Below are positions 3,251-28,858 of a stretch of 64,000 bases of DNA, one piece after another. The notes below the pieces were generated by a model that was not told the DNA's origin, searched no databases, and was given only the letters and a program-made list of their open reading frames with translations. How positions within the stretch are numbered: position 1 is the first letter of the stretch; each line of letters opens with the position of its first letter. Both the position numbers and the translations under genes were made by a program. The DNA lies in sequence record NC_023719.1; one strand, given 5' to 3'.

Positions 3251-3640
3251 ATGAAAAAAAGATTGAAAAGAAAATCTAATAGTATATTAAATGTCAATGA
3301 TATATGCGTTAATTACGATTATGTACATGGTGCGTTAGAAAATATTACTTTTGGTCGCATTAGTCAATCAGAAGGACAACCTTTAGAAATATGGAAAGCA
3401 GAGGATGGTAACTTGGTTTTAATTAACGGTTACCATCGCTTTGTAGAAGGTATATTGAAGGGTTTAAATGAGTTTGATGTTATTTATGTTGAGTATGATG
3501 ATGAAAATAAAGAATATATTGATGAGTATAATCCTTCAGCATATGATTTCCTTAATAAGAATTCAAAATATAGAGGGTTAGAAGATTTCAAGAGTGAAGA
3601 AGAATTAGATGAACTCGCATCACTACTATTAGAAGGGTAG
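3251..3640 (+). CDS. ParB/sulfiredoxin-like domain protein with basic KRLKRKS leader
   Basis: QPLEIWKAEDGNLVLINGYHRFVEG resembles the ParB/Srx P-I-x-V...L-I-D-G-H-H-R motif. Confidence 0.6.
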   Translation: MKKRLKRKSNSILNVNDICVNYDYVHGALENITFGRISQSEGQPLEIWKAEDGNLVLINGYHRFVEGILKGLNEFDVIYVEYDDENKEYIDEYNPSAYDFLNKNSKYRGLEDFKSEEELDELASLLLEG

Positions 3641-8349: not shown

Positions 8350-8829
8350 ATGATAACAGCTTTTAGAAGTGATTTAACTAAATTGCAAAACGTAGATTAT
8401 ATAGTGAACGCTGCGAATGCAAAAGGTCCCATGGATTCTGGAATAGCTGGGGCAATAAGAATAAATGGTGGAACTGAAATACAAGATGCTGCAATGTTAA
8501 TATGTTCTAAATTAAATTATCAACCTGGAGATATTTATGTTACACATGCTGGTAGATTATCATTTAAGAAAATAATTCACCTTGTAACAATGGAAAACCC
8601 AGGTGGAGTAACTTCATATGATATTGTTAGAAAATGCCTTCAGAATTTAATTTTATACTGTAAAGTTAATAATATTAAGAAAATCGCTTTACCAGCTTTA
8701 GGTACAGGTGTAGGTGGTTTAGATATTGATAAAATAGCAGGAATTTTTAAAGAAATATTGGGTAGTGTAGAAGAAATAGAGTTTTTAGTTGTAGATATTG
8801 ATCCAATGTTTATTTACAATTTTAAATGA
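8350..8829 (+). CDS. Macro domain protein (ADP-ribose binding/hydrolase)
   Basis: DYIVNAAN, GIAGAI-x3-GG, IIHLVT and IALPALGTGVGG macrodomain motifs. Confidence 0.9.
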   Translation: MITAFRSDLTKLQNVDYIVNAANAKGPMDSGIAGAIRINGGTEIQDAAMLICSKLNYQPGDIYVTHAGRLSFKKIIHLVTMENPGGVTSYDIVRKCLQNLILYCKVNNIKKIALPALGTGVGGLDIDKIAGIFKEILGSVEEIEFLVVDIDPMFIYNFK

Positions 8830-8863: not shown

Positions 8864-8900
8864 ATAGGATATAGCTAGTTTAGCTATATCCTATTTTTTT
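8864..8900 (+). terminator. Intrinsic terminator
   Basis: 14-bp perfect stem ATAGGATATAGCTA/TAGCTATATCCTAT plus T-run. Confidence 0.8.
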
Positions 8901-8928: not shown

Positions 8929-9849
8929 TTGAAAAGATTAAAGAGACAATCAAAAGTATTTAGACAATCAAGATTGAAAAAGAAATCTTGGGATGCAGTG
9001 AGTTTAAAACACTATACTAGTACCCAACATTTTATCGAGATAATGAACGAAGGCCAAATAACTCCTGGTGGTTACAATGGGAATATCTCAGGTGGTGGAC
9101 ATGTTAAGTATTTATCGATGAGTGATGGCAGCAATACTACAAAAAAAATGTCACCATCAGAAATAGATAGATTATTCTCTAGTGATTTATGGGAAATTGA
9201 TAAAGATTTATTGAACTATGTGAATGAAACGAAAGATACTGATGAATGGTACTCAAAACAAATTAATGTAAATATTATTCAACCTAGTCATGATCAAAAT
9301 GGTGTTTATTTAACTAATAGGTCTGATGAAAATGATTACGGAAAAGAAGCTGTTAATAATGGTTTAAGTGACGATTATCCTAACTTTGAAATAACTTTAG
9401 AATTTAATGTTCAAACTGATGCATTAGGTCCTGACTTAGATGATGGTAAAATAGATAAAGAGAGCGAAACTCCACTTTGGAGACAAACTATTGATTCTAT
9501 AGGTCAGTGTGTACATTATGGTCCTATTTCTATTGACTCAATTAGCCAAGTGATAATAAAGGATTATGGTCAAATAAATGGATATGAAATGAGGTTTTCA
9601 GATAGAGATAATTTTTTAAGTTGGGCTAGTGAATTTATAAGTTTTGAACAAGGTTTAAGTGCAGCAGATGCATATTCGCAAATTCAAAAAATGTATGAAG
9701 AATTTGACAATTATTATGAAGAAGAAGACTTTGATGATGAAAATATTAATATCAACGACGATGATGATTTTGATGATGATGATATTGATTTTGACATAGA
9801 TGATTTCGAATTCCCTGAAGATGAATTAAATGATGATGATTTAAAGTAG
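8929..9849 (+). CDS. Putative ADP-ribosyltransferase-fold protein, paralogue A, with basic leader and Asp-rich tail
   Basis: LKHYTS..EGQITPGG, GVYLT, ITLEFNV..LGPD, HYGPISIDSI resemble the H-x-T / VYL[ST] / GPI pattern of Tpt1/KptA-Arr-like ART folds; TTG start behind GAGGGTG. Confidence 0.55.
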   Translation: MKRLKRQSKVFRQSRLKKKSWDAVSLKHYTSTQHFIEIMNEGQITPGGYNGNISGGGHVKYLSMSDGSNTTKKMSPSEIDRLFSSDLWEIDKDLLNYVNETKDTDEWYSKQINVNIIQPSHDQNGVYLTNRSDENDYGKEAVNNGLSDDYPNFEITLEFNVQTDALGPDLDDGKIDKESETPLWRQTIDSIGQCVHYGPISIDSISQVIIKDYGQINGYEMRFSDRDNFLSWASEFISFEQGLSAADAYSQIQKMYEEFDNYYEEEDFDDENININDDDDFDDDDIDFDIDDFEFPEDELNDDDLK

Positions 9850-9914
9850 TTAAAATTGTAAAGATTAATCAAACTTATTCATATAATTATCTTGTCTAAG
9901 AAGGAGGATGAATA

Positions 9915-10751
9915 GTGAGCAACGCAGATATACAATATAATAAATTAGTATCTAACATTCTATTAAATGGATTGTGGGATAAAGATCAAGAAGTAAGAAC
10001 AAGATGGAAAGATGGTACCTCAGCTTACTCTAAAAGTATAATAGGGGCTCAGTTTAAATTTGATAATTCTGAAGTTCCAATTCTTACAACAAAAGAAGTA
10101 AAATGGGAAGCTGCTATTAAAGAAATCTTATGGATTTGGAAACAAAAAAGCAATGTAGTGCAAGATTTAAAAGATGTTGGTGTAAATATTTGGAATGATT
10201 GGGAATTAGCTGATGGCACTATTGGTAAAGCGTATGGGTATCAACTTGGCAAAAAATGTTTAAATTTAAATGGCGAAAAAGTAGATCAAGTTGATTATTT
10301 ATTACACAATTTAAAAAACACTCCCGCTTCCAGACGACACATTACTACATTATGGTCTATAGAAGATTTAAATGATATGAGTTTAACTCCTTGTGTTTGG
10401 AAAACTCAGTGGTTTGTAAAACAAAATAAATTGCATTTAATTGTAGAAGCTCGTTCGAGTGATACAGGTTTAGGGTTACCATTTAATATCTTTCAATACA
10501 ATGTTCTACAGAGAGTATTTGCTCAAGTTTTAGGTTATGAATTAGGCGATTATGTTTTCAACATTGGGGATGCCCATATCTACGAAAGACATATTGAACC
10601 TTTAACTTCTCAATTGGAATTACCTCAACATGATGTTCCAACTTTATGGATTAATCCAGAAAAGAAGAACTTTTACGATTTTGACATATCAGATTTCAAA
10701 TTAATTGGTTACGAGCATGGTCCTTTCATTAGATTACCAATAGCTATTTAG
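9915..10751 (+). CDS. thyA: Thymidylate synthase
   Basis: PILTTK, LTPC catalytic Cys, ARSSDTGLGLPFN and GDAHIYERH motifs. Confidence 0.95.
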   Translation: MSNADIQYNKLVSNILLNGLWDKDQEVRTRWKDGTSAYSKSIIGAQFKFDNSEVPILTTKEVKWEAAIKEILWIWKQKSNVVQDLKDVGVNIWNDWELADGTIGKAYGYQLGKKCLNLNGEKVDQVDYLLHNLKNTPASRRHITTLWSIEDLNDMSLTPCVWKTQWFVKQNKLHLIVEARSSDTGLGLPFNIFQYNVLQRVFAQVLGYELGDYVFNIGDAHIYERHIEPLTSQLELPQHDVPTLWINPEKKNFYDFDISDFKLIGYEHGPFIRLPIAI

Positions 10752-10762
10752 GAGGGTAAGAT

Positions 10763-11242
10763 TTGATTAATTTAATAGTAGCTTTAGATAAAAATAATCT
10801 AATAGGTAAAGATAATGACCTCCCTTGGCGTTTGCCTAGAGATTTACAGTACTTTAAGTCAAGAACTTTAAATAGTCCTATTGTTATGGGTAGAAAAACT
10901 TTCCAATCGCTTCCAGGTTTGTTACCAGATAGACAACATGTCATTTTAACGAAAAGTGGATATGCTGTAAGAACGCCAAGAGCTGAATCTCATTCTTCAG
11001 TTGAAAGTGTATTAGAAAAATTTAAAGACAAAGATATATACGTAATTGGTGGTTCTGAAATCTTTAATTTGTTTTTATCTTATGTAGATAGAATGTATGT
11101 TACTTACATCGATGAAGAATTCGAAGGAGATACTTATTTTCCAGATGTTTTAGATAATTGGAAAATGGTATCTAATGAAAAAGGGATAAAAGACGACAAA
11201 AACCCTTATGATTATTACTTTAGAGTATATGAAAAAAAATAA
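10763..11242 (+). CDS. dfrA: Dihydrofolate reductase
   Basis: LIGKDNDLPW, IVMGRKTF, YVIGGSEIF and EGDTYFP motifs; follows thyA. Confidence 0.95.
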   Translation: MINLIVALDKNNLIGKDNDLPWRLPRDLQYFKSRTLNSPIVMGRKTFQSLPGLLPDRQHVILTKSGYAVRTPRAESHSSVESVLEKFKDKDIYVIGGSEIFNLFLSYVDRMYVTYIDEEFEGDTYFPDVLDNWKMVSNEKGIKDDKNPYDYYFRVYEKK

Positions 11243-11329
11243 ATTTATAATTTTTAAAAGGTATTTTTTGGATTATAATTTTGATTTCTCGTCCCTATTA
11301 TGTATATGTAATGGGGAGGGGAAATTCAA

Positions 11330-11689
11330 ATGAAACGTCTTATTAAAAAGTCAGAAAAGACTTATGAAACTAAGAATGATAATAATGAAGTTGAACAGCG
11401 TGAAGAAGTAGATAATGAAGTTCATGAAGAAGTACAAGAAACAAATCATGAAGAAGTACATCCTGCAGATATGGAGAGAGAAGACCCTTATCTTGGAAGA
11501 TATGTAGAAATCACAAATCGTAGATCAAAGTATTATGGTTATCACGCAAGAGTAGATGATAAATTTTATACTGATAGATATAAAATTTACTTAGAACCAA
11601 AAAGAAGTGATGACGATGGTGGAAAAGGGTATATTATCAATTTTGTAGGTGTAAATGTTGCTTCTAACTGGTTTACTGTTGTTGAGTAA
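11330..11689 (+). CDS. Hypothetical protein with KRLIKKS leader, acidic linker and SH3/KOW-like C-terminus
   Basis: MKRLIKKSEK start; E/H/V-rich linker; GRYVEITNRRSKYYG..ARV strand pattern. Confidence 0.65.
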   Translation: MKRLIKKSEKTYETKNDNNEVEQREEVDNEVHEEVQETNHEEVHPADMEREDPYLGRYVEITNRRSKYYGYHARVDDKFYTDRYKIYLEPKRSDDDGGKGYIINFVGVNVASNWFTVVE

Positions 11690-11705
11690 GGGGAGATTAG
11701 TAAAA

Positions 11706-12029
11706 ATGACTTTAGATGAAATGCAGAAATGGTTTGAACTTTTTGCGGAAAAAGAAGGATGGCTCGAACATAAAAGTTTCGTGGATATTGGTTTTTTATT
11801 AGAAGAAGCTGGCGAAGTTGCAAGAGAAGTTCGGAGACACGAGATCGGTAGGCATGCACACGTAGATGAGAATGGTATGTCTAATAATGAAATGAAAGAA
11901 AAGTTAGCAGAAGAAATAGGAGATACATTACAGGCTCTATCAGTAATAGCATCTAGATATGATATTTCTCTAGCAGAAGCATTTAATATTCATAAAGAAA
12001 AAGTAATTAGAGAATATGGTGATATGTAA
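11706..12029 (+). CDS. MazG-like nucleotide pyrophosphohydrolase
   Basis: LLEEAGEVAREV...LAEEIGDTL (ExxE...ExxD) signature; start at ATG 11706. Confidence 0.85.
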   Translation: MTLDEMQKWFELFAEKEGWLEHKSFVDIGFLLEEAGEVAREVRRHEIGRHAHVDENGMSNNEMKEKLAEEIGDTLQALSVIASRYDISLAEAFNIHKEKVIREYGDM

Positions 12030-12082
12030 GTTGTACCGTTAATAATTATTTTTCTTTTTAAAACAGAAAGAGGTTAAAAATA

Positions 12083-12667
12083 ATGGCGAATAAAACTCGC
12101 ATATACTTTGACTGTGAATTTACAGGCTTACATCAAAATACAACTATGATTTCAATTGGGTTACTTGCTGATAATGGAGATTATTTTTATGCTGAGTTTA
12201 ATGACTACGATAGAGATCAAATAAACGACTGGTTAAAGGATAACGTACTAGCTAATTTGTTTTTCTTAAAACAAGTTGAAGAAAGACAATTAGTTTTTCC
12301 TAAGTCTATGAAAGTTGAAAAATATTTGATGTGTGGAAACACTAATCAAGTTGTTGAAAGATTAAAAGAGTGGTTGTCGAAATTTGAAGAAATAGAGATA
12401 TGGTCTGATTGTTTATCTTATGATTGGGTTCTATTTAATCAACTGTTTGGTGGAGCGCTCAATATACCAAAAAACATTTACTATATACCATTCGATATTT
12501 GTACGCTCTTTAAGATGAAAAATGTTGATCCAGATATTAGCAGAGAAGAATTTGGGAAAAATCACATAAGAGAAGATAACTATTTTAAATCTAATGTTAA
12601 AAAGCATAATTCTCTATGGGATGCATATTTAATAGAAGCTTGCTATAATAGATTGGAGGAAAAATAA
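12083..12667 (+). CDS. DEDD 3'-5' exoribonuclease (RNase AS/DUF5051-like)
   Basis: YFDCEFTGL, ISIGL, YDWVLF and HNSLWDA motifs. Confidence 0.8.
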   Translation: MANKTRIYFDCEFTGLHQNTTMISIGLLADNGDYFYAEFNDYDRDQINDWLKDNVLANLFFLKQVEERQLVFPKSMKVEKYLMCGNTNQVVERLKEWLSKFEEIEIWSDCLSYDWVLFNQLFGGALNIPKNIYYIPFDICTLFKMKNVDPDISREEFGKNHIREDNYFKSNVKKHNSLWDAYLIEACYNRLEEK

Positions 12668-13143
12668 TGGTAATGCCGTATAGTAACAAAACTATTCAAC
12701 ATCAACTAGATCTTTTTGACTCACCTATTGATTGGACGATTGATCAAAGTTATAATCCTGAAATCAAAAAATTAGAAAACACTATTAAGGGTATTTCTGA
12801 TAATATGCGTCAACAAATGCTTATTCTCCAAGGTTTAATTTTAGAATTACAGGGAAAAGCTAGTAACACTGGGAAATTTGACAAAAAATTATACGAAGAA
12901 ATAATGAAATATGCTGAAGTAGTTGAACAAACAAAGTCGACTTTAGGCGGTTTTAATGAATCACTAAATGGAGTAAAAGATATTATTGATTCTTTACAAG
13001 TAGGGCAAGAATTATTAGATGGTTTTAACGAATATAAAGAGAAACAAAAAGTGCGGCACCAAGATTTTTTCGTCGGTGGGGCAGACACTTTCATATCAGA
13101 TAATGTTAGAAATTATACTTTAAAACATAAGTTATATTTATAA
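12667..13143 (+). CDS. Hypothetical coiled-coil protein
   Basis: Overlaps the upstream stop; heptad-like composition. Confidence 0.65.
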   Translation: MVMPYSNKTIQHQLDLFDSPIDWTIDQSYNPEIKKLENTIKGISDNMRQQMLILQGLILELQGKASNTGKFDKKLYEEIMKYAEVVEQTKSTLGGFNESLNGVKDIIDSLQVGQELLDGFNEYKEKQKVRHQDFFVGGADTFISDNVRNYTLKHKLYL

Positions 13144-13170
13144 ATGTAGGTAAGGAAAGGGAGATTTGTT

Positions 13171-13473
13171 TTGAATTTTGATCCAATTAAGGAATTAAAA
13201 GATTTAGTAGTAGAAATAGAGGGAAAAGTGCCAACGGATATTATTGATTTATTAGATAAAAAAGTTGAGTATTACAAATCAAATGGTATTCATGATAGAA
13301 TGCACATTGGGAAAACGGATTGGGATCTAGTTAGTGCATCTGAATGGTTACTTAGTATGTTTATCGGAATTATTAAAAAGGGAAAAGAAGATAAACGAAA
13401 CTTTAATGTATTTGGTAATTGGTTAGAACACGTGTATCACTTCGTTATTAATAATAAACAAGGTTTTAAGTAA
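13171..13473 (+). CDS. Hypothetical protein
   Basis: GGGAG RBS; followed by a terminator hairpin near 13474-13497. Confidence 0.65.
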   Translation: MNFDPIKELKDLVVEIEGKVPTDIIDLLDKKVEYYKSNGIHDRMHIGKTDWDLVSASEWLLSMFIGIIKKGKEDKRNFNVFGNWLEHVYHFVINNKQGFK

Positions 13474-13574
13474 AGAGAGGTTTTCCTCTCTTTTTTTACA
13501 TAAAAGTGAATTAATTGTTATTACATTTTAACTCTTCTATATTCTTTATATGAATAGAAAGGAGGGGGAAAGTT

Positions 13575-13910
13575 GTGAGTGATTTTGATAAAACATTAAT
13601 GGGGAACATTGATGATGTTTTAAGAGATTTGCAAAATACAAAAGGGGTACGTTTAGATAAAGATAAAGTTGAGTTTTTAAAAATGATTTCAAAAACAAAA
13701 TACTCTGGACTAACAACTCCAAAACTAGTATCTTCAATGAATTTTTTAAAAGAGAAAAACGACGAATGGTTTGTTGAGCTATTAGATGATGGATTAGTTG
13801 AAAAGATTTCTTATCAAGCCCCTACAAGTAAAGTCAGACAAACATTTGAAGGTTGGTTTATCACTACTGCAGGAAGAAAAGTCTTAAAAGATGTCTTAAA
13901 GAAAATGTAA
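13575..13910 (+). CDS. Possible winged-helix DNA-binding protein
   Basis: LLDDGLVEK...WFITTAGRKVL resembles a wHTH wing and terminal helix. Confidence 0.45.
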   Translation: MSDFDKTLMGNIDDVLRDLQNTKGVRLDKDKVEFLKMISKTKYSGLTTPKLVSSMNFLKEKNDEWFVELLDDGLVEKISYQAPTSKVRQTFEGWFITTAGRKVLKDVLKKM

Positions 13911-13989
13911 GAGACAGTTAAACTCTGTCTCTTTTTTGATTAATATATAGGTATATTTAAATTTTCCAAATAAGAGAGGAAGTATACCT

Positions 13990-14466
13990 ATGAAACAATT
14001 TATCGAAGAAAAAGACATTTATATCGAAATGATGCAGCAATTAAAGGACAAATTCCATGACACGCTAGGTCACATTTTTGTTGATGAAATTTTAGTTATG
14101 ACAGATACTGAGTTTGAAATTAAGCCACCACGTGGAAAAGGTGGAGAAGATCCAAGTGAAGAAGCGATTGCGAAATGGGAAGATAAAAAACGTAAAGCTT
14201 GGAAATTTGAAATGAAGAAAATTCCAAAGTTATATCGAGATGCGCTTGATAAAAATAAAGAATTTGTTCTTATTGTTCGACAAAGCCTAGTTAAAGAATT
14301 AACAGATGCACAGGTTATTGCTCATGTTTATTCTGAAATGCGTAAAATCAATCATGAATATAAATTACAAAAACCAGATGTTCATACATTCTCTGATTTA
14401 GCGGAAAAATTAGGTCGTTCGGATTGGGACTCTGCTTATGATCTTCCTAATATTTTAGAAAATTAA
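13990..14466 (+). CDS. Phage metallopeptidase-like domain lacking HExxH, paralogue A
   Basis: LGHIFVDEI...EFVLIV...HVYSEMRKI...KPDVHTFSDLAEKLG aligns with 24493..24951. Confidence 0.5.
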   Translation: MKQFIEEKDIYIEMMQQLKDKFHDTLGHIFVDEILVMTDTEFEIKPPRGKGGEDPSEEAIAKWEDKKRKAWKFEMKKIPKLYRDALDKNKEFVLIVRQSLVKELTDAQVIAHVYSEMRKINHEYKLQKPDVHTFSDLAEKLGRSDWDSAYDLPNILEN

Positions 14467-14470
14467 GTGG

Positions 14471-14833
14471 GTGTTTAATTTGGATCAAGAGTTAATAGAT
14501 ATTCGACAAGATTTATTAAATATGCAACACCAAATAGCAAATTTAAGTATTTCAATTGAGAATTTAAGTAATCAAAATTTTACTCAACAAAACAATATTA
14601 ACATGATGGCTCAATCTATAAATATGCAAATTCAACTTTTAAATCAGATGAATCAAGTAATTAGCAATCTTACAAATAAGTTATCAGATATGGAGATTAA
14701 TTTTGATAATTCCGATAACTTCACTAAAGATATAATTGATGGCCAAAACGTTATTTTAGCTGAAATTAATGAGTTAAAGAATTCCATAGAAGGAATTCGA
14801 TTCTATATGTTAAATAGCAACTCAAATTTCTAA
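14471..14833 (+). CDS. Asn/Gln-rich coiled-coil protein
   Basis: Long heptad repeat. Confidence 0.6.
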   Translation: MFNLDQELIDIRQDLLNMQHQIANLSISIENLSNQNFTQQNNINMMAQSINMQIQLLNQMNQVISNLTNKLSDMEINFDNSDNFTKDIIDGQNVILAEINELKNSIEGIRFYMLNSNSNF

Positions 14834-14938
14834 TGTTATATTTTTCAACAGATGCCTATATTTTAAATATTGAATAGTTTCAAACAAAAGGCATGTGTTA
14901 GTTCAAAATAATCTTAGAAATTGGTGGTGAATTGGTAA

Positions 14939-15184
14939 ATGAAGTCTTCAAAGAGAGTTGATGAAAGAATCGTTAAAGATTATCGAATAATTGATTCTGC
15001 TTGGGATGAATTCTCTGATTACGTTGGTGAACATAATATAGGAACACCTTTGACTGTTAAACAATTTGAAGAAATATTTAGTAAACTAAATAGAAACAAT
15101 AAGTTTTCGCCAATGAAGGATTATATTTTGGAATCTTTCAGGAATGATTGTTATGCATGGCCATTTGTAGAAAAGAACCAATGA
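14939..15184 (+). CDS. Hypothetical protein
   Basis: 81-aa ORF behind GGTGGTG. Confidence 0.55.
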   Translation: MKSSKRVDERIVKDYRIIDSAWDEFSDYVGEHNIGTPLTVKQFEEIFSKLNRNNKFSPMKDYILESFRNDCYAWPFVEKNQ

Positions 15185-15265
15185 TTTATTGGTTCTTTTT
15201 TTTTAAAAAAAGCGGAAAAATACATATAATTCTTTTAATTAAAAAGAGAAAGGTTTGTTGTATCT

Positions 15266-15820
15266 TTGAAAAAACGAGGTTATTTAGAAATTATTTCAGG
15301 CGGAATGTACTCCGGCAAAAGCGAAGAATTAATAAGACGATTAAAAAGATGTAGTTTTGCAAATATTAAATTTCAATTATTTAAACCAGAAATTGACAAT
15401 AGGTATAGCGAGAACAAAGTAGTAACGCATGATAAAGATTCACAACTAAGCGCTCTATCAGTTAGTACTCCAAAAGAATTGATATCACTAGTTGAATCAG
15501 ATACTACGGTTGTTGGTATTGATGAAGTTCAATTCTTTGATGAAACAATTGTTGAAGTAATAGAGCAATTAAATGAAAAAGGTATAAGAGTCGTAGCTGC
15601 TGGATTAGATATGTATAGTACTGGGGAACCATTTGGTTCAACTGGAATTTTGATGGCAAAAGCTAAGTACGTAAGTAAACTACACGCAGTATGTGTAGTA
15701 TGTGGGAATAACGCTTATATTTCTAAGGCTATTAGTGAGAATGATAGTGCTAATAATGAAAGTACAGTTAAAGTTGGAAGCGTCGGGGATTATGTTGCAG
15801 TATGTGAAAATTGTAAATAA
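15266..15820 (+). CDS. tdk: Thymidine kinase
   Basis: GGMYSGKSEEL P-loop, GIDEVQFF, AGLD and CVVCG...CENC zinc site. Confidence 0.95.
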   Translation: MKKRGYLEIISGGMYSGKSEELIRRLKRCSFANIKFQLFKPEIDNRYSENKVVTHDKDSQLSALSVSTPKELISLVESDTTVVGIDEVQFFDETIVEVIEQLNEKGIRVVAAGLDMYSTGEPFGSTGILMAKAKYVSKLHAVCVVCGNNAYISKAISENDSANNESTVKVGSVGDYVAVCENCK

Positions 15821-15844
15821 AACAAATACAAAGGGGAGACACTT

Positions 15845-16192
15845 ATGTCAAAAGAAATAGGGAAGCAGGCGATAGTAACTGATCATGGCAGTCGAAGAAT
15901 AAAAGATAGACTAGGATTAAGCAAAAAAATAGCAGATAAGGTATCTCAAAAAGCGTTAGAGAACGGTGTTAGTCATAGTGAAACAAAGGGTAGCTTTAAA
16001 AAATATATAGATGCTTTATATTTAAAACATAAAAAAGCTAATAATATTAAGATTTATCACAGAAAGATTTATTTGTTTAGAAATGAAGTATTAATCACAG
16101 TATTAAATTTACCTAATAAATATTCTGTGGTTGCAGATAAATTACAAAGAATTAAAAACCAAGAGAAAGAAAAAACAAAAGAGTCTCAATGA
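15845..16192 (+). CDS. Hypothetical basic protein
   Basis: GGGGAG RBS; VTDHGSRRIKDR; followed by a terminator. Confidence 0.65.
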   Translation: MSKEIGKQAIVTDHGSRRIKDRLGLSKKIADKVSQKALENGVSHSETKGSFKKYIDALYLKHKKANNIKIYHRKIYLFRNEVLITVLNLPNKYSVVADKLQRIKNQEKEKTKESQ

Positions 16193-16379
16193 CTCTTTTT
16201 TATTTTGAAAAATTTTCTAAAATATTTTGGTATTTTTTCATGAAATCCATCATACATTGTATTATAAAGAATTATTATTTAGTGTTATATTTTCAATAGT
16301 TTTTAATAATATTAGTAATTATAATAATTTGTCTTCTTTTAAGAAAAAGTGATATTTTAATAAATTTAAAGTAGAGGGA

Positions 16380-16685
16380 GTGGTGAGATTGTTATGTATA
16401 AATTGTTTGCAAAATGCTACAAATAAACTTATAGCAGATGACATTATCATCCTTGAATATTTGAATAATCAGGGGGCAACAATTCCACAATGTACTATGT
16501 CAAGAGAAACTATAAAAGAAGAATTGAAGATGACAAATCATAAGTGTTATTCGTCAATTAGTCGTTTAGAATGTTTAGATATGATTGAACGTAAAGTTGG
16601 TACAAAATCAAGTAGATATTTTATTACAAAGAATGGTCAACATGTTTTGTATTTGGTGAATGATAAATTACAGGAGGTTGAATAA
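16380..16685 (+). CDS. Winged helix-turn-helix protein (TubR-like by position)
   Basis: MSRETIKEELKMT..CYSSISRLECLDMIER...YFITKNG wHTH pattern; abuts the tubulin gene. Confidence 0.65.
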   Translation: MVRLLCINCLQNATNKLIADDIIILEYLNNQGATIPQCTMSRETIKEELKMTNHKCYSSISRLECLDMIERKVGTKSSRYFITKNGQHVLYLVNDKLQEVE

Positions 16686-17816
16686 ATGGCTGGTACTAAA
16701 ATTGGTTTTCTTTGTTTTGGTGAAGGCGGTTCAAATGTTGGAGAGTATGCTGCTCAAAAAGGTTTTCCAGTAGTTGCAGTCAATAGCGCTAAAATAGATT
16801 TAGAAAAAATAAAAATAATTCCAAAAGATTGTAGGATTCACTTGGATGGCTGGGAAGGTGCTGGCAGAAATAGAGATGTAGGTAGGGAAGCAGTTCTATC
16901 TCACGCAGAAACAATCTTTGAAAAGATAAAAGATAAATTTAAAGATTGTGACATGGTGTTTTCAGTAGCTTCAACAGCTGGCGGTACAGGTTCAGGATCT
17001 TTAGCGGTTGGTATCGAACTTCTTTCAGAAATAAATAGTAAAGTTGGAGCGATAACTATTTTGCCAGACAAAAATGAAAGCCCAAAAGCTCATATGAATT
17101 CTTTAGAATGTTTCTCTGAGTTAAGCCAATACGAACAATTGAATAGTACGTTTATCATTGATAATGAAAAAGCAAATCAAGTATTTAAAGGCAAAGACAA
17201 AATTCAAATTTATCAATTATCTAATAATCAATTGATTGACAATTTAGCGGAAATATGCTCACTAACCGATCAACACGCTTTAGTTTCAAATTTTGATAAA
17301 AATGATCTACTTGAAATACTAAGTGAACGAGGAACCACTATAATTAGCAAGATAACAATACCAACAGAAGAATTGAAAGATGAAGTAGAAATTGTTAATG
17401 CAATTAGAAAATCTTGGGAAACTGTTTGTTCTTCTGACATTGGTGATGGGCAAATAGTAAAAGCTGGTGTATTTGGTAAAATACCAAAAGAATTAACTTC
17501 AATGATAGATTCAAGAAAAGTTTTTGAAGAAATTGGAATGCCATATGATATAATTGAATCTTACTATTTGAATACTGAACACTCTAATCATTGTATTTTC
17601 TATACTATTCTTTCTGGATTATCCTACCCAATTGAAAGATTGAAACAAATAGAAAGTGAAGTACAGATGATTGAACAAGAATTGATTAATAGAGTAGAAG
17701 TTTCTAGGACCCAAGTTTTTTCAACTAATAATTGGAACTCTAAGTTTAAACGACCTGAACAAAAACAAAATGTTAAAACATCGTTAAGTGATAGATTAAC
17801 AAGATTTACTAAGTAA
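16686..17816 (+). CDS. Tubulin/FtsZ-family GTPase (TubZ/PhuZ-like)
   Basis: FGEGGSNVG, GAGRNRDVG, AGGTGSG tubulin signature, IIDNEK and NFDKND T7-loop-like motif. Confidence 0.9.
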   Translation: MAGTKIGFLCFGEGGSNVGEYAAQKGFPVVAVNSAKIDLEKIKIIPKDCRIHLDGWEGAGRNRDVGREAVLSHAETIFEKIKDKFKDCDMVFSVASTAGGTGSGSLAVGIELLSEINSKVGAITILPDKNESPKAHMNSLECFSELSQYEQLNSTFIIDNEKANQVFKGKDKIQIYQLSNNQLIDNLAEICSLTDQHALVSNFDKNDLLEILSERGTTIISKITIPTEELKDEVEIVNAIRKSWETVCSSDIGDGQIVKAGVFGKIPKELTSMIDSRKVFEEIGMPYDIIESYYLNTEHSNHCIFYTILSGLSYPIERLKQIESEVQMIEQELINRVEVSRTQVFSTNNWNSKFKRPEQKQNVKTSLSDRLTRFTK

Positions 17817-17821
17817 TATTT

Positions 17822-17852
17822 AACAAGAGAGAATATTCTCTCTTGTTTTTTT
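17822..17852 (+). terminator. Intrinsic terminator
   Basis: AACAAGAGAGAA/TTCTCTCTTGTT stem plus T-run. Confidence 0.8.
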
Positions 17853-17879
17853 TATTGTTAGAATAAGGTTGGTGATACT

Positions 17880-18977
17880 TTGAAAAAAATCTACTTTTTT
17901 AAAGATGGGCATAAAGATATGCATAATTACTTGGGTAAAAAAGGCGCAAACCTATGCGAAATGTATAATATGGATTTGCCAGTACCAAATGGATTTATTA
18001 TACCCACATACTTAAATAGAGAAACAAAAGAATTAAGAAGAGAAATAGAAAATGCAATTGAAAAACTTGGAGGTAGGTTAGGAGAAGATTTATTTGTTTC
18101 AGTACGTTCAAGTGCTCCCACCTCAATGCCAGGAATGATGGATAGTTTTTTGAATATAAGTAATTATGATGACTTATTTAATTCTATAGAGCTAGTGGTT
18201 AATTCATGGAACAATAAAAGAGCTGTTACTTATAGGGAAAATAATGGTATCTCTGAAGGAGTGGGTACAGCTATAGTAATACAAAAAATGATCTTTGGAA
18301 ATAAAGACGAGAATTCTGGTTCTGGAGTTGTTTTTAGCAGAAATCCTAATAATGGAGAAGAAGGACTAGTCGGGGAGATATTGTTTAATTCTTTTGGTGA
18401 GGAATTAGTGCTTGGTAAAAAGACACCACTTTCAATTACTATATTAAAAGAAAAAATGCCCAACGTTTATACATTATTGGAAAATATATCAAAAAAGCTT
18501 GAAACTCATTTTTCATCTATGCAAGAAATAGAATTCACTATTGAAGAAAAAGAGTTATATGTATTGCAGACAAGAGAAGTAAAAAAGAAAAACAAAATAG
18601 TTAAGTTTAAAATAAAAGAAAAACAAAAAAATCCAATAACAATAGGTATAGCATCTTCTTATGGAGCGGCTACAGGGTTAGTTGTTTTTGATTCAAAGAA
18701 AGCAGTAGAATTAAAATCAAAAGGTAAAAACGTTATTTTAGTAAGACTTGAGACTAGTCCCGATGACATTGAGGGAATAATCGCTTGCGATGGCATTGTA
18801 ACTTTACAGGGTGGAGCAACTTCTCATGCAGCTGTTGTTGCTAGAAGTATGAATAAGCCATGTATTTGTGGCTGTCAATACTTAGATGTAAATGAATTAG
18901 AATGGATAACAATTGAAGGTCAAACTGGTAAAGTTTTTCTCGGTGAGTACGATTTAGAAATAGATGATAGTCTATAA
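17880..18977 (+). CDS. Truncated pyruvate phosphate dikinase-like protein (ATP-grasp plus phospho-His domain only)
   Basis: LGKKGANL..PVPNGF, VSVRSSAPTSMPGMMD, EFTIE..LQTR and GGATSHAAVVAR; ends without the C-terminal PEP/pyruvate barrel. Confidence 0.85.
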   Translation: MKKIYFFKDGHKDMHNYLGKKGANLCEMYNMDLPVPNGFIIPTYLNRETKELRREIENAIEKLGGRLGEDLFVSVRSSAPTSMPGMMDSFLNISNYDDLFNSIELVVNSWNNKRAVTYRENNGISEGVGTAIVIQKMIFGNKDENSGSGVVFSRNPNNGEEGLVGEILFNSFGEELVLGKKTPLSITILKEKMPNVYTLLENISKKLETHFSSMQEIEFTIEEKELYVLQTREVKKKNKIVKFKIKEKQKNPITIGIASSYGAATGLVVFDSKKAVELKSKGKNVILVRLETSPDDIEGIIACDGIVTLQGGATSHAAVVARSMNKPCICGCQYLDVNELEWITIEGQTGKVFLGEYDLEIDDSL

Positions 18978-19093
18978 TATATCATTCTTATATTATTTTT
19001 TACTGATAATTTAATTTAAAATATATTTCTATTTTAATTAATATAAATATATAGTAAATATATTAAGAATAAGAGAAAGAGAGGTGTTTTAAA

Positions 19094-19177
19094 ATGGGTT
19101 GCAAATGTAATGATTGTTGTTGTGGGTGCGAATGCAAAGATTGTGAAAATGGATGTTGTGATAAAAGTGAAGAATAA
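19094..19177 (+). CDS. Metallothionein-like 27-aa peptide
   Basis: MGCKCNDCCCGCECKDCENGCCDKSEE* (10 Cys); GAGGTG RBS at 19081; terminator directly downstream; below the ORF-track cutoff. Confidence 0.7.
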   Translation: MGCKCNDCCCGCECKDCENGCCDKSEE

Positions 19178-19187
19178 ATAATAAATG

Positions 19188-19219
19188 AGTCGATTAGTTA
19201 AAATCTAATCGACTTTTAT
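19188..19219 (+). terminator. Intrinsic terminator
   Basis: AGTCGATTAG/CTAATCGACT stem plus T-run. Confidence 0.75.
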
Positions 19220-19245
19220 TTATTATTTAAACATGAGGTGGTAAC

Positions 19246-19662
19246 TTGACTAGAAATATGATAGTAGAAATAGAAGAGTTTATAGATTCGTTAATAATAA
19301 TGCACAATATTATTAATGAAAACAACATAAGTTTTGAGTTAAAAAAATCAGATAATGGTGTATTAACTTTATTTTCTATTAGTGGAAATTTAATTATAAA
19401 TTCAATTAATGTAATAAAATTAGTTACAGTAACCGCAGAAGAAGATTTTTCTTGCACAGCGATGTGTGAAGTAAGTAGATTCAGTCCATTTTATAGAAAG
19501 TTACTAGACTATAAGAGCTCTCACGCTGGTTATATGAATTTAGATTTGGATAATTATCATAAAAAGTTTGAGTATAACTTTAGAGATTTAAAAAATTTTA
19601 ATGATTTCTTTATGAAAATGATATGGGACGTTTTTATCTCTAACTTTATTTCTTCAAAATAA
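19246..19662 (+). CDS. Hypothetical protein
   Basis: GAGGTGG RBS, 138 aa. Confidence 0.6.
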   Translation: MTRNMIVEIEEFIDSLIIMHNIINENNISFELKKSDNGVLTLFSISGNLIINSINVIKLVTVTAEEDFSCTAMCEVSRFSPFYRKLLDYKSSHAGYMNLDLDNYHKKFEYNFRDLKNFNDFFMKMIWDVFISNFISSK

Positions 19663-19747
19663 ACTTTTTAAAAACCATATAATTGATATATAATATATTG
19701 CAACTCTTATTTTAGATTTGAATTTTAAATAATAGGAGTTGTTTTTT

Positions 19748-20587
19748 TTGAAGAGATTAAAGAAAAAAGCTTGGGAAACCATTGAATTATATCATCACAC
19801 TAGTTCGCAGTTTTTTATGCAAGTGATGGAAGAAGGGCAACTTACTTCTGGTGGATACAATGGCAACATATCTGGAGGAGGTCACACTAGTATTTTCGAT
19901 GTATTTAGCGATGAAGACCCTTCATCTAATATATATTACCCTTTAATAATTTTAGATGAAATGATAAAAGTACCTAGTGATGATAAAAAAGTTACTAAAA
20001 CATTAACTGATTTAGTTAATAAAATGAAAGAAGAAAACCCTGATTGGCAATCTGAAGAAATAGAAGTAAGTGAGACTAAGCCTAGTGGAAACGAAATAGG
20101 CGTTTACTTAAGTAGTGATAAATACAATTCTGTTGGTTATGCTGAAGATGCAGTTTCTAAAGGCGATACAAGTAAATTAAACTTTGAAGTTACATTAGCT
20201 ATTAAGGTTCAAACTGATGCTTTAAGTCCGGATTACGATGATCTAGTTAGCCTTGAGTTAGATATTGATGATAGAAGTTCTGTTCCACTATGGAAACAAT
20301 CACTTAATCAAGTTGAACAGTGTGTTCATAATGGACCTATTGATTCTGAAAGCATAGTTAGTGTTACTTTTCATAGTTTAGAAAATGCTTATAATGATTC
20401 TGATGGGAAGTTTAATGATGAAGATGAATTTACTGAATTTGTAAGTCAATATATTAAAGAAGATGAGCCTATGTCTACAATGGAAGCGTTAAGTCAATTA
20501 GCTTTGATGGATTCAGAATATGCAAATACAGAAAGTTTAGTGATGTCTTCAAAGAAAATAAAGAGATTAAAAAAGTTTAATAAATAA
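19748..20587 (+). CDS. Putative ADP-ribosyltransferase-fold protein, paralogue B
   Basis: LYHHTSS..EGQLTSGGYNGNISGGGH, GVYLSS..VGYAEDAV, VQTDALSPD, HNGPIDSESI; clear paralogue of 8929..9849. Confidence 0.55.
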   Translation: MKRLKKKAWETIELYHHTSSQFFMQVMEEGQLTSGGYNGNISGGGHTSIFDVFSDEDPSSNIYYPLIILDEMIKVPSDDKKVTKTLTDLVNKMKEENPDWQSEEIEVSETKPSGNEIGVYLSSDKYNSVGYAEDAVSKGDTSKLNFEVTLAIKVQTDALSPDYDDLVSLELDIDDRSSVPLWKQSLNQVEQCVHNGPIDSESIVSVTFHSLENAYNDSDGKFNDEDEFTEFVSQYIKEDEPMSTMEALSQLALMDSEYANTESLVMSSKKIKRLKKFNK

Positions 20588-25771: not shown

Positions 25772-26731
25772 GTGGATTGGAGCTTAGGGATAACGGAATC
25801 TATTAAAAAAGAAGTCGGTGAAAGTTGGGAATTAATAAAAGAGAATATTGGAGATTTCTTCCTATATTTATCACAACAATTACAAGAAGGAGCAAATAGT
25901 TTTTTAGCAGAAATGCTAGATTTCGTACTCTATACTCCTTTAGTAGCTGATAATGAAATCATTTTATCTATTTGGGCGACAGTTAGAATTATTTCATTTG
26001 CACTCATTGGTGTAATGTTCGTTTGGGAAGGATTTAAGAAAGTTATTTCAACCGACAATATTATAAGACATGTGGAGTTTAAAGAAATGTTTGTAAGGAT
26101 GGTTTACGGAATAGTATTAGCTGTTTTTAGCTTAGACATTATTGATTTGATGATTAACTTTAACAATGTTTTAATCGATACAGTGAAAAGTTCTTTCCCA
26201 ATGACATTAGAATCTAAGTTAAATATAAATGGAGTATTCAGCTTCCTTATGGTATTAGCTTTAGTAATAGTTCAAGTTGTATTAGGAATAAAACTCGTCT
26301 TACAGTACTGGATGCGTATAGCAGAGATATGGCTCATGGCTGTATTAGGTCCTCTGGTATACGTACTATGGATAAACCCTGGCTCGAAATTAAGTGGAGT
26401 TTTATCGCAGTGGGTAAGCAGGCTTACAACTACAATATTTACTACATTCATATGGGCTTTAATTTTAGCAATTTATTCTGGTATGGTGAGTATGATAGCT
26501 TCTGCTGGCATGTTAGCTGGTTTCCCTACTCTAGGTCCAATTGCAGGAATTTGTTTATCAATAGCCATGTTGCTAATTATGATTGAAACACCAGCATTCT
26601 TAAGGAGTTTTATGGACAACCAACCTAATGCATTGCATTTAGTTAAGAAAGTTTATACCAACGTTAAATCAAGTACGCCTATGGGGTTTGCTAATAAAGC
26701 TGCTGGATGGATACTACCTAGTAAAACGTAA
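25772..26731 (+). CDS. VirB6/TrbL-like polytopic membrane protein
   Basis: Multiple TM helices with RIAEIWLMAVLGPL..VLWINP and QWVSRL, typical of Gram-positive VirB6-like proteins; gene context. Confidence 0.7.
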   Translation: MDWSLGITESIKKEVGESWELIKENIGDFFLYLSQQLQEGANSFLAEMLDFVLYTPLVADNEIILSIWATVRIISFALIGVMFVWEGFKKVISTDNIIRHVEFKEMFVRMVYGIVLAVFSLDIIDLMINFNNVLIDTVKSSFPMTLESKLNINGVFSFLMVLALVIVQVVLGIKLVLQYWMRIAEIWLMAVLGPLVYVLWINPGSKLSGVLSQWVSRLTTTIFTTFIWALILAIYSGMVSMIASAGMLAGFPTLGPIAGICLSIAMLLIMIETPAFLRSFMDNQPNALHLVKKVYTNVKSSTPMGFANKAAGWILPSKT

Positions 26732-26835
26732 TTTATTTAAATTACGTTTTTTTATTTTTTTAAATTATTTACCATATTTTAGGTCATTTTTCATCGTTAG
26801 TGAATATAATAATTATATAAGGAGGAGGAAATAAT

Positions 26836-27213
26836 ATGATAGAGAAAGAACCATTATGTGCTATACCAAGAAATTTAAATGAGCCAGATACTATTATCCA
26901 CTATCCTGTAAAGTTAAATTGGAAACAAATTAGTTATATTTGCGTAGGTGTAGCGGGAGCATATTTTGCTTTTCAAACTGGGTTACCTATTGAATATAAA
27001 ACTGCTTTAATGGCTGGTAGCGTTGGAACTTCATTAGTTACTAGTTTAATAAAATATGAAGATTCTACTATTGATGAATTGGTAATTGATAGTTTGCACT
27101 ATGCTCAGAAGAAAAATATCTATAGACAACTAGAGAAACGAGGTGCAATGAATGTCAAATTCAACTCTTATGAAGAAAAAATCACCGGAGATTATGCCTT
27201 TTCAGAGTTCTAG
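26836..27213 (+). CDS. PrgI-like (VirB3-analogue) membrane protein
   Basis: IPRNLNEPD..KLNWKQISYI plus two TM helices, directly before the VirB4-like gene. Confidence 0.7.
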   Translation: MIEKEPLCAIPRNLNEPDTIIHYPVKLNWKQISYICVGVAGAYFAFQTGLPIEYKTALMAGSVGTSLVTSLIKYEDSTIDELVIDSLHYAQKKNIYRQLEKRGAMNVKFNSYEEKITGDYAFSEF

Positions 27214-28843: not shown

Positions 28844-28858
28844 GGAAGGAGTGTAATT

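Follow-up and report, generated by a model that had tools for sequence, protein, structure and literature searches.

A fast-diverging family of ten predicted ADP-ribosyltransferases in Bacillus phage G, two of them beside candidate ADP-ribose erasers

Background

This study concerns gp123 and gp141, two genes of Bacillus phage G that lie in a 64,000-nucleotide stretch of its genome (the window) and that are deposited as hypothetical, with no function given. Their products are predicted here to be ADP-ribosyltransferases (ARTs), a superfamily with several well-described branches. DarT (DarT1/DarT2, DUF4433) is the single-stranded-DNA ART of DarTG, a bacterial toxin-antitoxin locus in which DarT2 is partnered by the macrodomain protein DarG. 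Tpt1/KptA, of the H-H-h clade, carries an N-terminal winged-helix RNA lobe in addition to its NAD lobe. The H-Y-E enzymes are exemplified by diphtheria toxin (H21/Y54/Y65/E148) and PARP1 (H862/Y896/Y907/E988). In Arr, a minimal H-Y-D enzyme that modifies rifampin, Asp84, in the loop after strand 4, serves in place of the Glu. A further clade, R-S-E, holds the Alt/Mod proteins of phage T4, the cholera-like toxins and DraT.

In the survey by Iyer et al. 2022 (PMC9503650), the H-Y-[EDQ] clade follows the definition of Aravind and colleagues and takes in forms with Q or D, and section 3.3.1 states that at least 10 ARTs are encoded by phage G. A 2025 multi-omics re-annotation of this phage still leaves two thirds of its genes hypothetical. 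Its main text mentions neither ADP-ribosylation nor the genes studied here, and a paper on the phage G tail does not mention these genes either.

We consider that gp123 and gp141 are probably, though not securely, active ARTs that modify macromolecules. They would represent a divergent H-Y-[EDQ] family that, among solved structures, stands closest to DarT and to the Tpt1 NAD lobe. Because some copies adjoin ADP-ribose-removing enzymes, phage G probably tags host molecules with ADP-ribose in a reversible manner.

Two paralogous genes in the window

The window is 100% identical to Bacillus phage G (megablast). Its position 1 is position 62001 of the 497,513-bp record NC_023719 and it spans 62001-126000. 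Unless a contig or record is named, coordinates below are those of the window. The two open reading frames (ORFs) singled out in an initial annotation, made from the sequence alone, are present as described:

8929..9849, + strand: gp123, 306-residue ORF, ART-fold protein (AlphaFold2 predicted local distance difference test score, pLDDT, 86.4; predicted template-modelling score, pTM, 0.72)
19748..20587, + strand: gp141, 279-residue ORF, ART-fold protein (pLDDT 90.5, pTM 0.76)

Both begin with a TTG start codon preceded by a ribosome-binding site, and the first residues of each protein are M-K-R-L-K. They share 39% identity over 264 residues (BLASTP, E 5e-54), which is far past chance, and on this sequence evidence they are true paralogues. 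All of the shared blocks that had been pointed out are there: H-x-T-S, GGYNGNISGGGH, GVYL, DAL.PD.DD, PLW.Q and QCVH.GPI.

An ADP-ribosyltransferase fold

AlphaFold2 models were built with the family alignment. As the decisive test, and independently of Foldseek, the gp123 model was compared with 48,161 representative PDB chains in an unbiased VIA-align scan. The top 50 chains all belong to the ART superfamily. Z values were 7.5 for TreX, 7.4, 7.0 and 6.5 for Tpt1, 7.0 for LT, 6.6 for pertussis S1 and 6.4 for DarT1, followed by DUF952 and scabin (both 6.2), Arr (5.5) and PARPs (4-5). Pierisin, many PARPs, CNF, TccC3, IcmQ and Tne2 are also among the top 50.

Other searches gave the same picture. 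With gp141, the top Foldseek matches in the PDB were ARTs only (TreX/TreTu, PltA, pertussis S1, cholera A1, DarT and scabin). When 91 of the Foldseek chains were re-checked with VIA-align, 62 reached Z>=5, with 116-120 residues aligned over the whole domain. The AFDB clusters yielded DUF4433/DarT (E 1.3e-3 and 2.6e-3) as well as DUF3841 and DUF952, and the ESM Atlas yielded DUF3990, DarT, DUF3841, Lart1 and scabin-like families. Among predicted viral structures (Foldseek, BFVD), the top relatives of gp141 were other phage G proteins, namely gp233, gp336, gp53, gp568, gp610, gp532 and gp251. Thus, confident models lead to ART-superfamily proteins in each of five structural resources (Foldseek, VIA-align, AFDB, BFVD and ESM Atlas), in agreement with the ART-like core first proposed. 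The structure prediction suggested at that time as a check also gave the split-sheet NAD-binding fold. The predicted fold of gp123 and gp141, a split beta-sheet of two three-stranded units, is almost certainly that of an ART.

Sequence profiles point in the same direction. A profile of the short paralogues, compared with PDB sequences, matched E. coli C7 DarT1 (8baq_A) across strands 1-4 (E 9.4e-5) and, more weakly, yeast Tpt1 (E 3e-3); the full-family profile matched Tpt1 with E 0.019. Matches of individual members to Pfam are weak and below threshold but are all to the ART clan (PARP, Tox-ART-HYD1, Diphtheria_C and DUF3990), and precomputed PF00644 PARP matches exist for three gp53-like relatives. 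One divergent paralogue (L007:10967-11824, in a related contig) matches both the family (hhalign E 4e-13) and Pfam PARP (E 1.9e-5, 24.7 bits with a cut-off of 26.7), and therefore bridges the two. Judged by these profiles, the family is detectably homologous to established ART families.

It might be argued that a common alpha/beta arrangement has produced the likeness by chance in proteins of unrelated function, since the structural Z values all lie at 5-7.5, a range that is attainable by chance according to the note supplied with the tool. This is extremely unlikely. The 50 best of the 48,161 chains are exclusively ARTs and the match to DarT1 comes from an independent sequence profile. In addition, motif order and spacing fit H/Y/Y/[E/Q], and the genes are linked in the genome to two unrelated families of ADP-ribose hydrolase (see below).

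The predicted active site

The most strongly conserved polar residues were counted in 75 family sequences, using gp141 numbering:

H16: 74/75; predicted strand 1 (11-19)
T18: 74/75
Y120: 65 Y, 10 F; predicted strand 3 (118-122)
Y131: 69 Y, 4 F, 2 H; start of predicted helix 131-137
D162: 72 D, 3 N; loop after strand 4, at the position of the ADP-ribosylating turn-turn (ARTT) loop
W182: 71/75
Q191: 67 Q, 2 E, 2 H; opens predicted strand 5 (191-195)
G196: 71/75

The corresponding motifs in the two genes are as follows:

9010..9021, + strand: gp123 strand-1 motif H28-Y-T-S, with the putative NAD-binding His (His and Thr each in 74/75 family members)
9301..9312, + strand: gp123 strand-3 motif G-V-Y127-L; the second Tyr is Y137, 10 residues on
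9418..9444, + strand: gp123 acidic loop D-A-L-G-P-D169-L-D-D, which follows strand 4 and occupies the ARTT-loop position
9505..9528, + strand: gp123 strand-5 motif Q193-C-V-H-Y-G-P-I, with Gln at the catalytic-Glu position of H-Y-E ARTs
19793..19804, + strand: gp141 strand-1 motif H16-H-T-S
20099..20140, + strand: gp141 G-V-Y120-L (strand 3) to Y131
20216..20242, + strand: gp141 acidic loop D-A-L-S-P-D162-Y-D-D
20318..20341, + strand: gp141 strand-5 motif Q191-C-V-H-N-G-P-I

The H..Y core recognised in the initial annotation is therefore conserved, with the His in strand 1 and the Tyr in strand 3, and is accompanied by the profile matches to DarT1 and Tpt1. The family has the strand-1 H-x-[ST], the strand-3 Tyr with a second Tyr about 11 residues on, and the Gln opening strand 5 that characterise the H-Y-[EDQ] clade. 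From the pattern of residues its members are H-Y-Q representatives of this clade, with an extra invariant Asp. We take the position of Q191 to be that of diphtheria toxin Glu148 and PARP1 Glu988, and the Asp of the invariant P-D (D162) is presumably the counterpart of the Arr Asp. By analogy with Asp84 of Arr, it is likely that D162 supplies the carboxylate.

A Gln in place of the catalytic Glu, together with the pseudo-PARP and IcmQ structures found among the matches, would also suit a catalytically dead protein that merely binds NAD+, ADP-ribose or a partner, as do PARP13, the TASOR pseudo-PARP and IcmQ. We regard such pseudo-ARTs as quite unlikely here. The His, both Tyr, the Asp and the Gln are kept down to about 20% identity over the 75 sequences, and the conserved pairing with erasers described below is hard to square with a protein that does not write. 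Moreover, Q and D forms belong to the H-Y-[EDQ] clade by its definition, as given in PMC9503650.

Comparison with described transferases

Of the solved proteins, DarT is the one matched most significantly by sequence, and it resembles the family in structure (Z 5.5-6.4) and in the H-x-T motif of strand 1. It differs in that the phage G family has Gln where DarT has its catalytic Glu, and in that the family sits in a lytic megaphage whereas DarTG is a bacterial toxin-antitoxin locus. Scanning of 43 members gave no match to Pfam DarT (PF14487), and PADLOC gave none; the likeness to DarT1 is a remote one, seen with profiles only.

With Tpt1, the LYHxTS..I...G.I.P of the family aligns with L.HGT..I...G.I.P, and Tpt1 structures are the matches with the lowest root-mean-square deviation (rmsd), with Z 6.5-7.4 and up to 21% identity. 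However, the family domain starts about 10 residues from the N-terminus and lacks the winged-helix RNA lobe and, because of this, the Arg-His of the Tpt1 catalytic tetrad; it also has Tyr where Tpt1 has His in strand 3. Pfam and NCBIfam scores for Tpt1 (PF01885) are far below the cut-offs and only the strand-1/helix motif aligns, which places the family outside Tpt1.

The H-Y-E enzymes share with the family, in order and in spacing, the His, the Tyr, the second Tyr 10-11 residues on and a polar start to strand 5 (reference numbering as given in Background). Weak Pfam PARP and Diphtheria_C matches lend support, although the phage G paralogues are below the thresholds. The family differs by its strand-5 Gln and by the extra invariant Asp after strand 4, and it has no helical regulatory or translocation domain. 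Arr resembles it as a small core without accessory domains (structural Z 5.5); there is no significant sequence match, and the target of Arr is a small molecule.

For T4 Alt, ModA and ModB, which are phage-encoded ARTs that reprogram the host, the analogy is functional, as it is for DraT-DraG and Tre1-Tri1, in which an ART is paired with a DraG-type arginine hydrolase. The active site of the R-S-E clade differs from the H-Y-Q of the family, where H-x-T-S, G-V-Y-L and Q-C-V-H are found instead of Arg, S-T-S and E-x-E/Q-x-E. The likeness to R-S-E toxins is thus at the level of fold only.

Size and distribution of the family

The phage G genome was rebuilt from the annotated record and all ORFs of at least 50 amino acids were searched with a hidden Markov model (HMM) of the family. 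Ten members were found, with the following E-values:

gp123: 1e-90
gp141: 5e-88
gp233: 3e-60
gp336: 5e-22
gp531: 2e-18
gp53: 2e-18
gp251: 6e-14
gp568: 9e-12
gp532: 4e-11
gp610: 2e-9

The two dispersed paralogues of the initial annotation are thus real but are an incomplete account, since the whole genome has ten copies, two of them in the window. The cited section of PMC9503650 likewise gives at least ten. No named family was found for gp123 or gp141 in Pfam, NCBIfam, PADLOC or PHROGs, where the sole match is PHROG 13493 ('unknown function'), and a single-sequence PDB search returned just low-complexity matches to an acidic tail. The suggestion of a new family holds to the extent that no model in these four collections names it, but not with respect to the proteins themselves, which probably already figure in the phage G count of section 3.3.1. 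As a published survey counts at least ten ARTs in phage G, this is not a discovery from nothing: the gp123/gp141 family adds a so far uncharacterised member to a known class of enzyme, and the result is a useful annotation rather than a new kind of system.

Outside phage G the family is rare. A word search of 5.8 billion proteins gave only nine proteins, and HMMER, run exhaustively on 1.84 billion cluster representatives, gave 40. Phage G is the only carrier among 50,697 deposited phage genomes (tblastn); no member was found in bacteria or archaea across 185,579 species genomes; and in IMG/VR the search met only phage G and a single contig of 175 kb. Every contig that carries relatives (L002, L006, L007, L008 and L011) is a piece of a G-like megaphage, the remaining genes being syntenic homologues of those in phage G. 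In each syntenic comparison the most diverged genes are the family members, at 35-42% identity versus 45-74% for their neighbours, and at the gp141 position the relatives have two or three tandem copies.

Contig L002 carries TubZ, Replic_Relax, TrbL and VirB4-like genes and was considered as a possible conjugative plasmid. This was dropped because the same genes, which resemble those of type IV secretion systems (T4SS), occur in the phage G window and are syntenic homologues: the TrbL-like, VirB4/TraG-like and Replic_Relax genes at 25772-31336 are 47-53% identical to those at L002:10089-14457. T4SS-like genes are therefore kept in G-like phages, and short fragments could be mistaken for conjugative plasmids.

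No RNA-seq of phage G infection was found among indexed runs. One short contig each in a wastewater and a soil metatranscriptome lies within gp141 (219 nt with 1 mismatch at 19803-20021, and 172 nt with none at 20348-20519). These give a faint hint that gp141 is transcribed, but may represent DNA carry-over. Phage G DNA is also present in a soil metagenome, with 5 differences in 3.5 kb.

The variable insert

Between the GGGH and GVYL blocks lies a variable segment:

9103..9282, + strand: gp123 variable insert (residues 59-118), which separates strands 2 and 3
19886..20080, + strand: gp141 variable insert, residues 47-111, predicted strand-strand-helix-strand-helix-strand

This segment, 60 residues long in gp123 and 65 in gp141, had been described as unrelated in the two proteins and swapped between them, a description that does not survive closer comparison. 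Identity is lower in the insert (20%) than in the core (45%), but the alignment is nearly gap-free. Profiles restricted to the insert, one for the gp141-like and one for the gp123-like group, match each other (hhalign probability 94%, E 1.1e-7, score 38), the top score among one reversed and 30 column-shuffled controls being 13.2. The order of elements is also identical in both AlphaFold models. On the strength of the alignment, the profile match over controls and the shared element order, the insert is one subdomain that diverges faster than the core and not a replacement cassette. A search of the ESM Atlas with the insert alone gave no credible domain match.

The size of the insert varies among 46 relatives: it is 60-81 residues in about 22, 0-14 residues or absent in about 20, and 97-144 residues in four. 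The further proposal that the insert sets different targets finds no support, as the insert is homologous in gp123 and gp141 and is absent in about 20 of the 46 relatives, including gp233, which has an eraser partner of its own.

Candidate erasers and NAD salvage

Two features immediately upstream of gp123 are relevant:

8350..8829, + strand: gp122, stand-alone macrodomain of MacroD/YmdB type, candidate ADP-ribose eraser (Pfam Macro, E 7e-25)
8864..8894, + strand: terminator-like hairpin in the gp122-gp123 gap, with a stem of 14 bp and then a T run (1 found, 0.3 expected)

The gp122 protein (159 amino acids) consists of a macrodomain only. Its best PDB relatives are TTHA0132 (5e-15), PARP14 macro1 and YmdB, with DarG macrodomains weaker (9e-7); in NCBIfam, it matches a generic ADP-ribose-binding protein (2e-22) and DarG (7.5e-16). 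The order macrodomain-ART-thymidylate synthase recurs in L006, whose macrodomain is 74% identical to gp122. In the same contig (L006:1777-3784) a GIY-YIG/NUMOD3 homing-endonuclease gene divides the thymidylate synthase gene beside the gp123 homologue in two, which has the look of an intron-like insertion. The arrangement recalls DarT2-DarG in that gp123 too has a macrodomain partner. It differs in that gp122 is a stand-alone protein of MacroD type without the C-terminal, DarT-binding domain of DarG, and in that the macrodomain gene comes first. By these sequence features the family lies outside DarT and gp122-gp123 is not a DarG-type pair, though the two genes are adjacent and their adjacency is conserved.

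A second eraser candidate is associated with gp233. This paralogue is transcribed divergently from gp234, a DraG-type ADP-ribosylglycohydrolase (ADP_ribosyl_GH) that matches DraG (5e-43) and the Tri1 chain of 6dre (5e-34). A divergent pair of an ART and such a hydrolase also occurs in L007 and in L008, where the ART is a natural two-domain fusion. Because two unrelated families of ADP-ribose hydrolase are linked, across lineages, with ARTs that retain only 35-42% identity, the context strongly supports a writer role.

The same context raises the question of whether gp122-gp123 and gp233-gp234 are toxin-antitoxin or superinfection-exclusion modules, in which an ART toxin, rather than a host-takeover effector, is held in check by its eraser. 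The antidote-first order and the hairpin ahead of gp123, which would give more eraser than writer transcript, are what such a module might show; the divergent pair is arranged like DraT-DraG and Tre1-Tri1; and pairs of an ART and an ADP-ribosylglycohydrolase (ART-ARG) acting as toxin-antitoxin systems in phages are described by Iyer et al. (PMC9503650). Nevertheless, we consider this very unlikely. No partner accompanies eight of the ten paralogues, gp141 among them, and the absence of the family from the 185,579 bacterial and archaeal genomes is unlike typical mobile toxin-antitoxin modules. The hairpin is not seen in L006, and its interpretation as a conserved attenuator is accordingly unsupported. 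This alternative is, in any case, about biological role and not chemistry, and overlaps with the explanation that we prefer, namely that gp123 and gp141 are transferases acting on macromolecules.

Outside the window, phage G carries an NAD+ salvage and repair cluster, gp273-gp283, at 200123-207372 of the record (L016:624-7873). It includes a Nudix hydrolase (gp273), a PncA-like nicotinamidase (gp275), a nicotinate phosphoribosyltransferase (NaPRT, gp277), a true KptA (gp280), a nicotinate mononucleotide (NaMN) adenylyltransferase (gp281) and an NAD synthetase (gp283).

These salvage genes would equally serve enzymes that consume NAD+ without tagging macromolecules: NADases, enzymes that make or process small ADP-ribose derivatives, or Tpt1-like phosphate-directed transferases, whose products the macrodomain and the ADP-ribosylglycohydrolase would clean up. 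Tpt1 gives the structural matches of lowest rmsd (2.2-2.7 A) as well as sequence matches, the structural search also brought up NADases with an ART fold, for instance Tne2, and MacroD-type macrodomains are generally known to act on ADP-ribose-1''-phosphate and O-acetyl-ADP-ribose. On the other hand, the family domain opens at strand 1, without the N-terminal RNA-binding lobe of Tpt1, and phage G already has a true KptA in gp280. The partner of gp233 is of the DraG/Tri1 type, that is, the kind that removes ADP-ribose from protein arginine, and ten fast-diverging paralogues suit varied macromolecular targets better than a single small-molecule reaction. We therefore think this explanation unlikely.

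A basic terminal motif

Nearly all family members open with (M)-K-R-L-[IK]-K-K; R3 and L4 are each present in 65 of the 66 sequences that cover those positions. A C-terminal R-L-[KR]-[KR] motif is found in 20 of 46 members. In gp141, RLKK occurs at residues 3-6 and again at 273-276 (the C-terminal copy at 20564-20575), while gp123 has two N-terminal copies of RLK[RK]. In the two-domain fusion of L008 (L008:1959-3296, P0011) the junction is formed by the same motif, ..S-S-K-N-R-L-K-K-K-A-W.. At the gp123 C-terminus (9715-9846) there is instead a tail of about 45 residues, nearly all Asp, Glu, Phe or Ile. This acidic tail, also present in the closest gp123 relative (P0006), stands in place of the basic C-terminal motif of other members and might mimic a nucleic acid or act in auto-inhibition.

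The N-terminal motif is not confined to ARTs. It heads 24 phage G ORFs outside the family compared with 2.6 expected from its internal frequency (Poisson 1.5e-15). In the window these are gp126 (11330-11689) and an ORF at 3251-3640; elsewhere they include the head-module genes gp9, gp10, gp17 and gp20, and the Nudix gene gp334, which lies two genes upstream of the minimal ART paralogue gp336. The role of the motif might lie in packaging or ejection, in recognition by the phage ClpXP (gp257/gp258) or in a preference at the start of translation. A more specific idea, which we put forward as doubtful, is that it is a portable terminal tag marking a set of effectors, the ten ARTs with their different targets included, for delivery or timed destruction. 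If true, megaphages would possess a kind of targeting code that has so far gone undescribed in them.

Other neighbouring genes

The gene next to gp141, gp142, is assigned to a PHROG labelled 'virion structural protein'; the other gp141 neighbours are replication and partition genes. As to the virion delivery put forward as a possibility in the initial annotation, a Pfam domain scan found no MuF or portal fusion in gp123 or gp141. Slightly upstream, gp139 (17880-18977) is a truncated pyruvate-phosphate-dikinase-like gene with the ATP-grasp (PPDK_N) and swivel (PEP-utilizers) domains only. It comes after the TubZ-like tubulin gene gp138, and the order tubulin-kinase-ART copies is kept in one G-like contig.

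Proposed mechanism

In the mechanism that we favour, NAD+ would be bound in the cleft of the split beta-sheet, where H16, Y120 and Y131, to judge from their motif positions, would hold the ribose and nicotinamide. Asp162 would be the likely carboxylate, with Gln191 placed at the Glu148/Glu988 position. ADP-ribose would then be passed to a macromolecule of the host, or possibly of the phage, and the nicotinamide released might be recycled by the phage PncA, NaPRT, NaMN adenylyltransferase (NaMNAT) and NAD synthetase. Since dedicated erasers are encoded alongside, the mark would be reversible or self-limited for at least two paralogues, gp122 presumably serving gp123 and gp234 serving gp233; here the adjacency is observed and the function deduced from it. 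The region between strands 2 and 3, which is the D-loop in PARPs and an active-site loop in cholera toxin, contains the insert in this family, and the insert probably controls access to the NAD site or makes contact with the substrate.

The target may differ between paralogues. Kinship with DarT1 and Tpt1, together with the basic termini, would favour a nucleic acid; for gp233, the DraG/Tri1-type partner favours, by analogy, protein arginine; and the MacroD-type partner of gp123 would fit acidic residues or phosphate-linked nucleic-acid ends.

Several observations weigh against this interpretation. On the structural side, the Foldseek E-values in the PDB are weak (best 0.02), every single structural match has Z <8, and none of the Pfam ART models reaches its gathering score on gp123 or gp141. 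At the active site, the canonical catalytic Glu is replaced by Gln in 67 of 75 members, a change that abolishes transfer in many toxins, and the roles assigned to D162 and Q191 are based on motif order and secondary structure only. Finally, an eraser lies next to just two of the ten phage G paralogues, of which gp141 is not one.

Conclusions

Phage G is, to our knowledge, the only long-cultivated megaphage, and ten of its hypothetical genes can now be seen as one fast-evolving ART family. The enzyme class is well known, and the finding is best viewed as a useful annotation and an experimental lead. The family provides a natural series for studying ART specificity, from a minimal core of 140 amino acids to versions with an insert, with an H-Y-Q site and an invariant Asp. 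With eraser partners of two chemically different types and a full NAD salvage pathway in the same genome, it offers a concrete and testable picture of reversible ADP-ribosylation as a major tool of host manipulation in megaphages.

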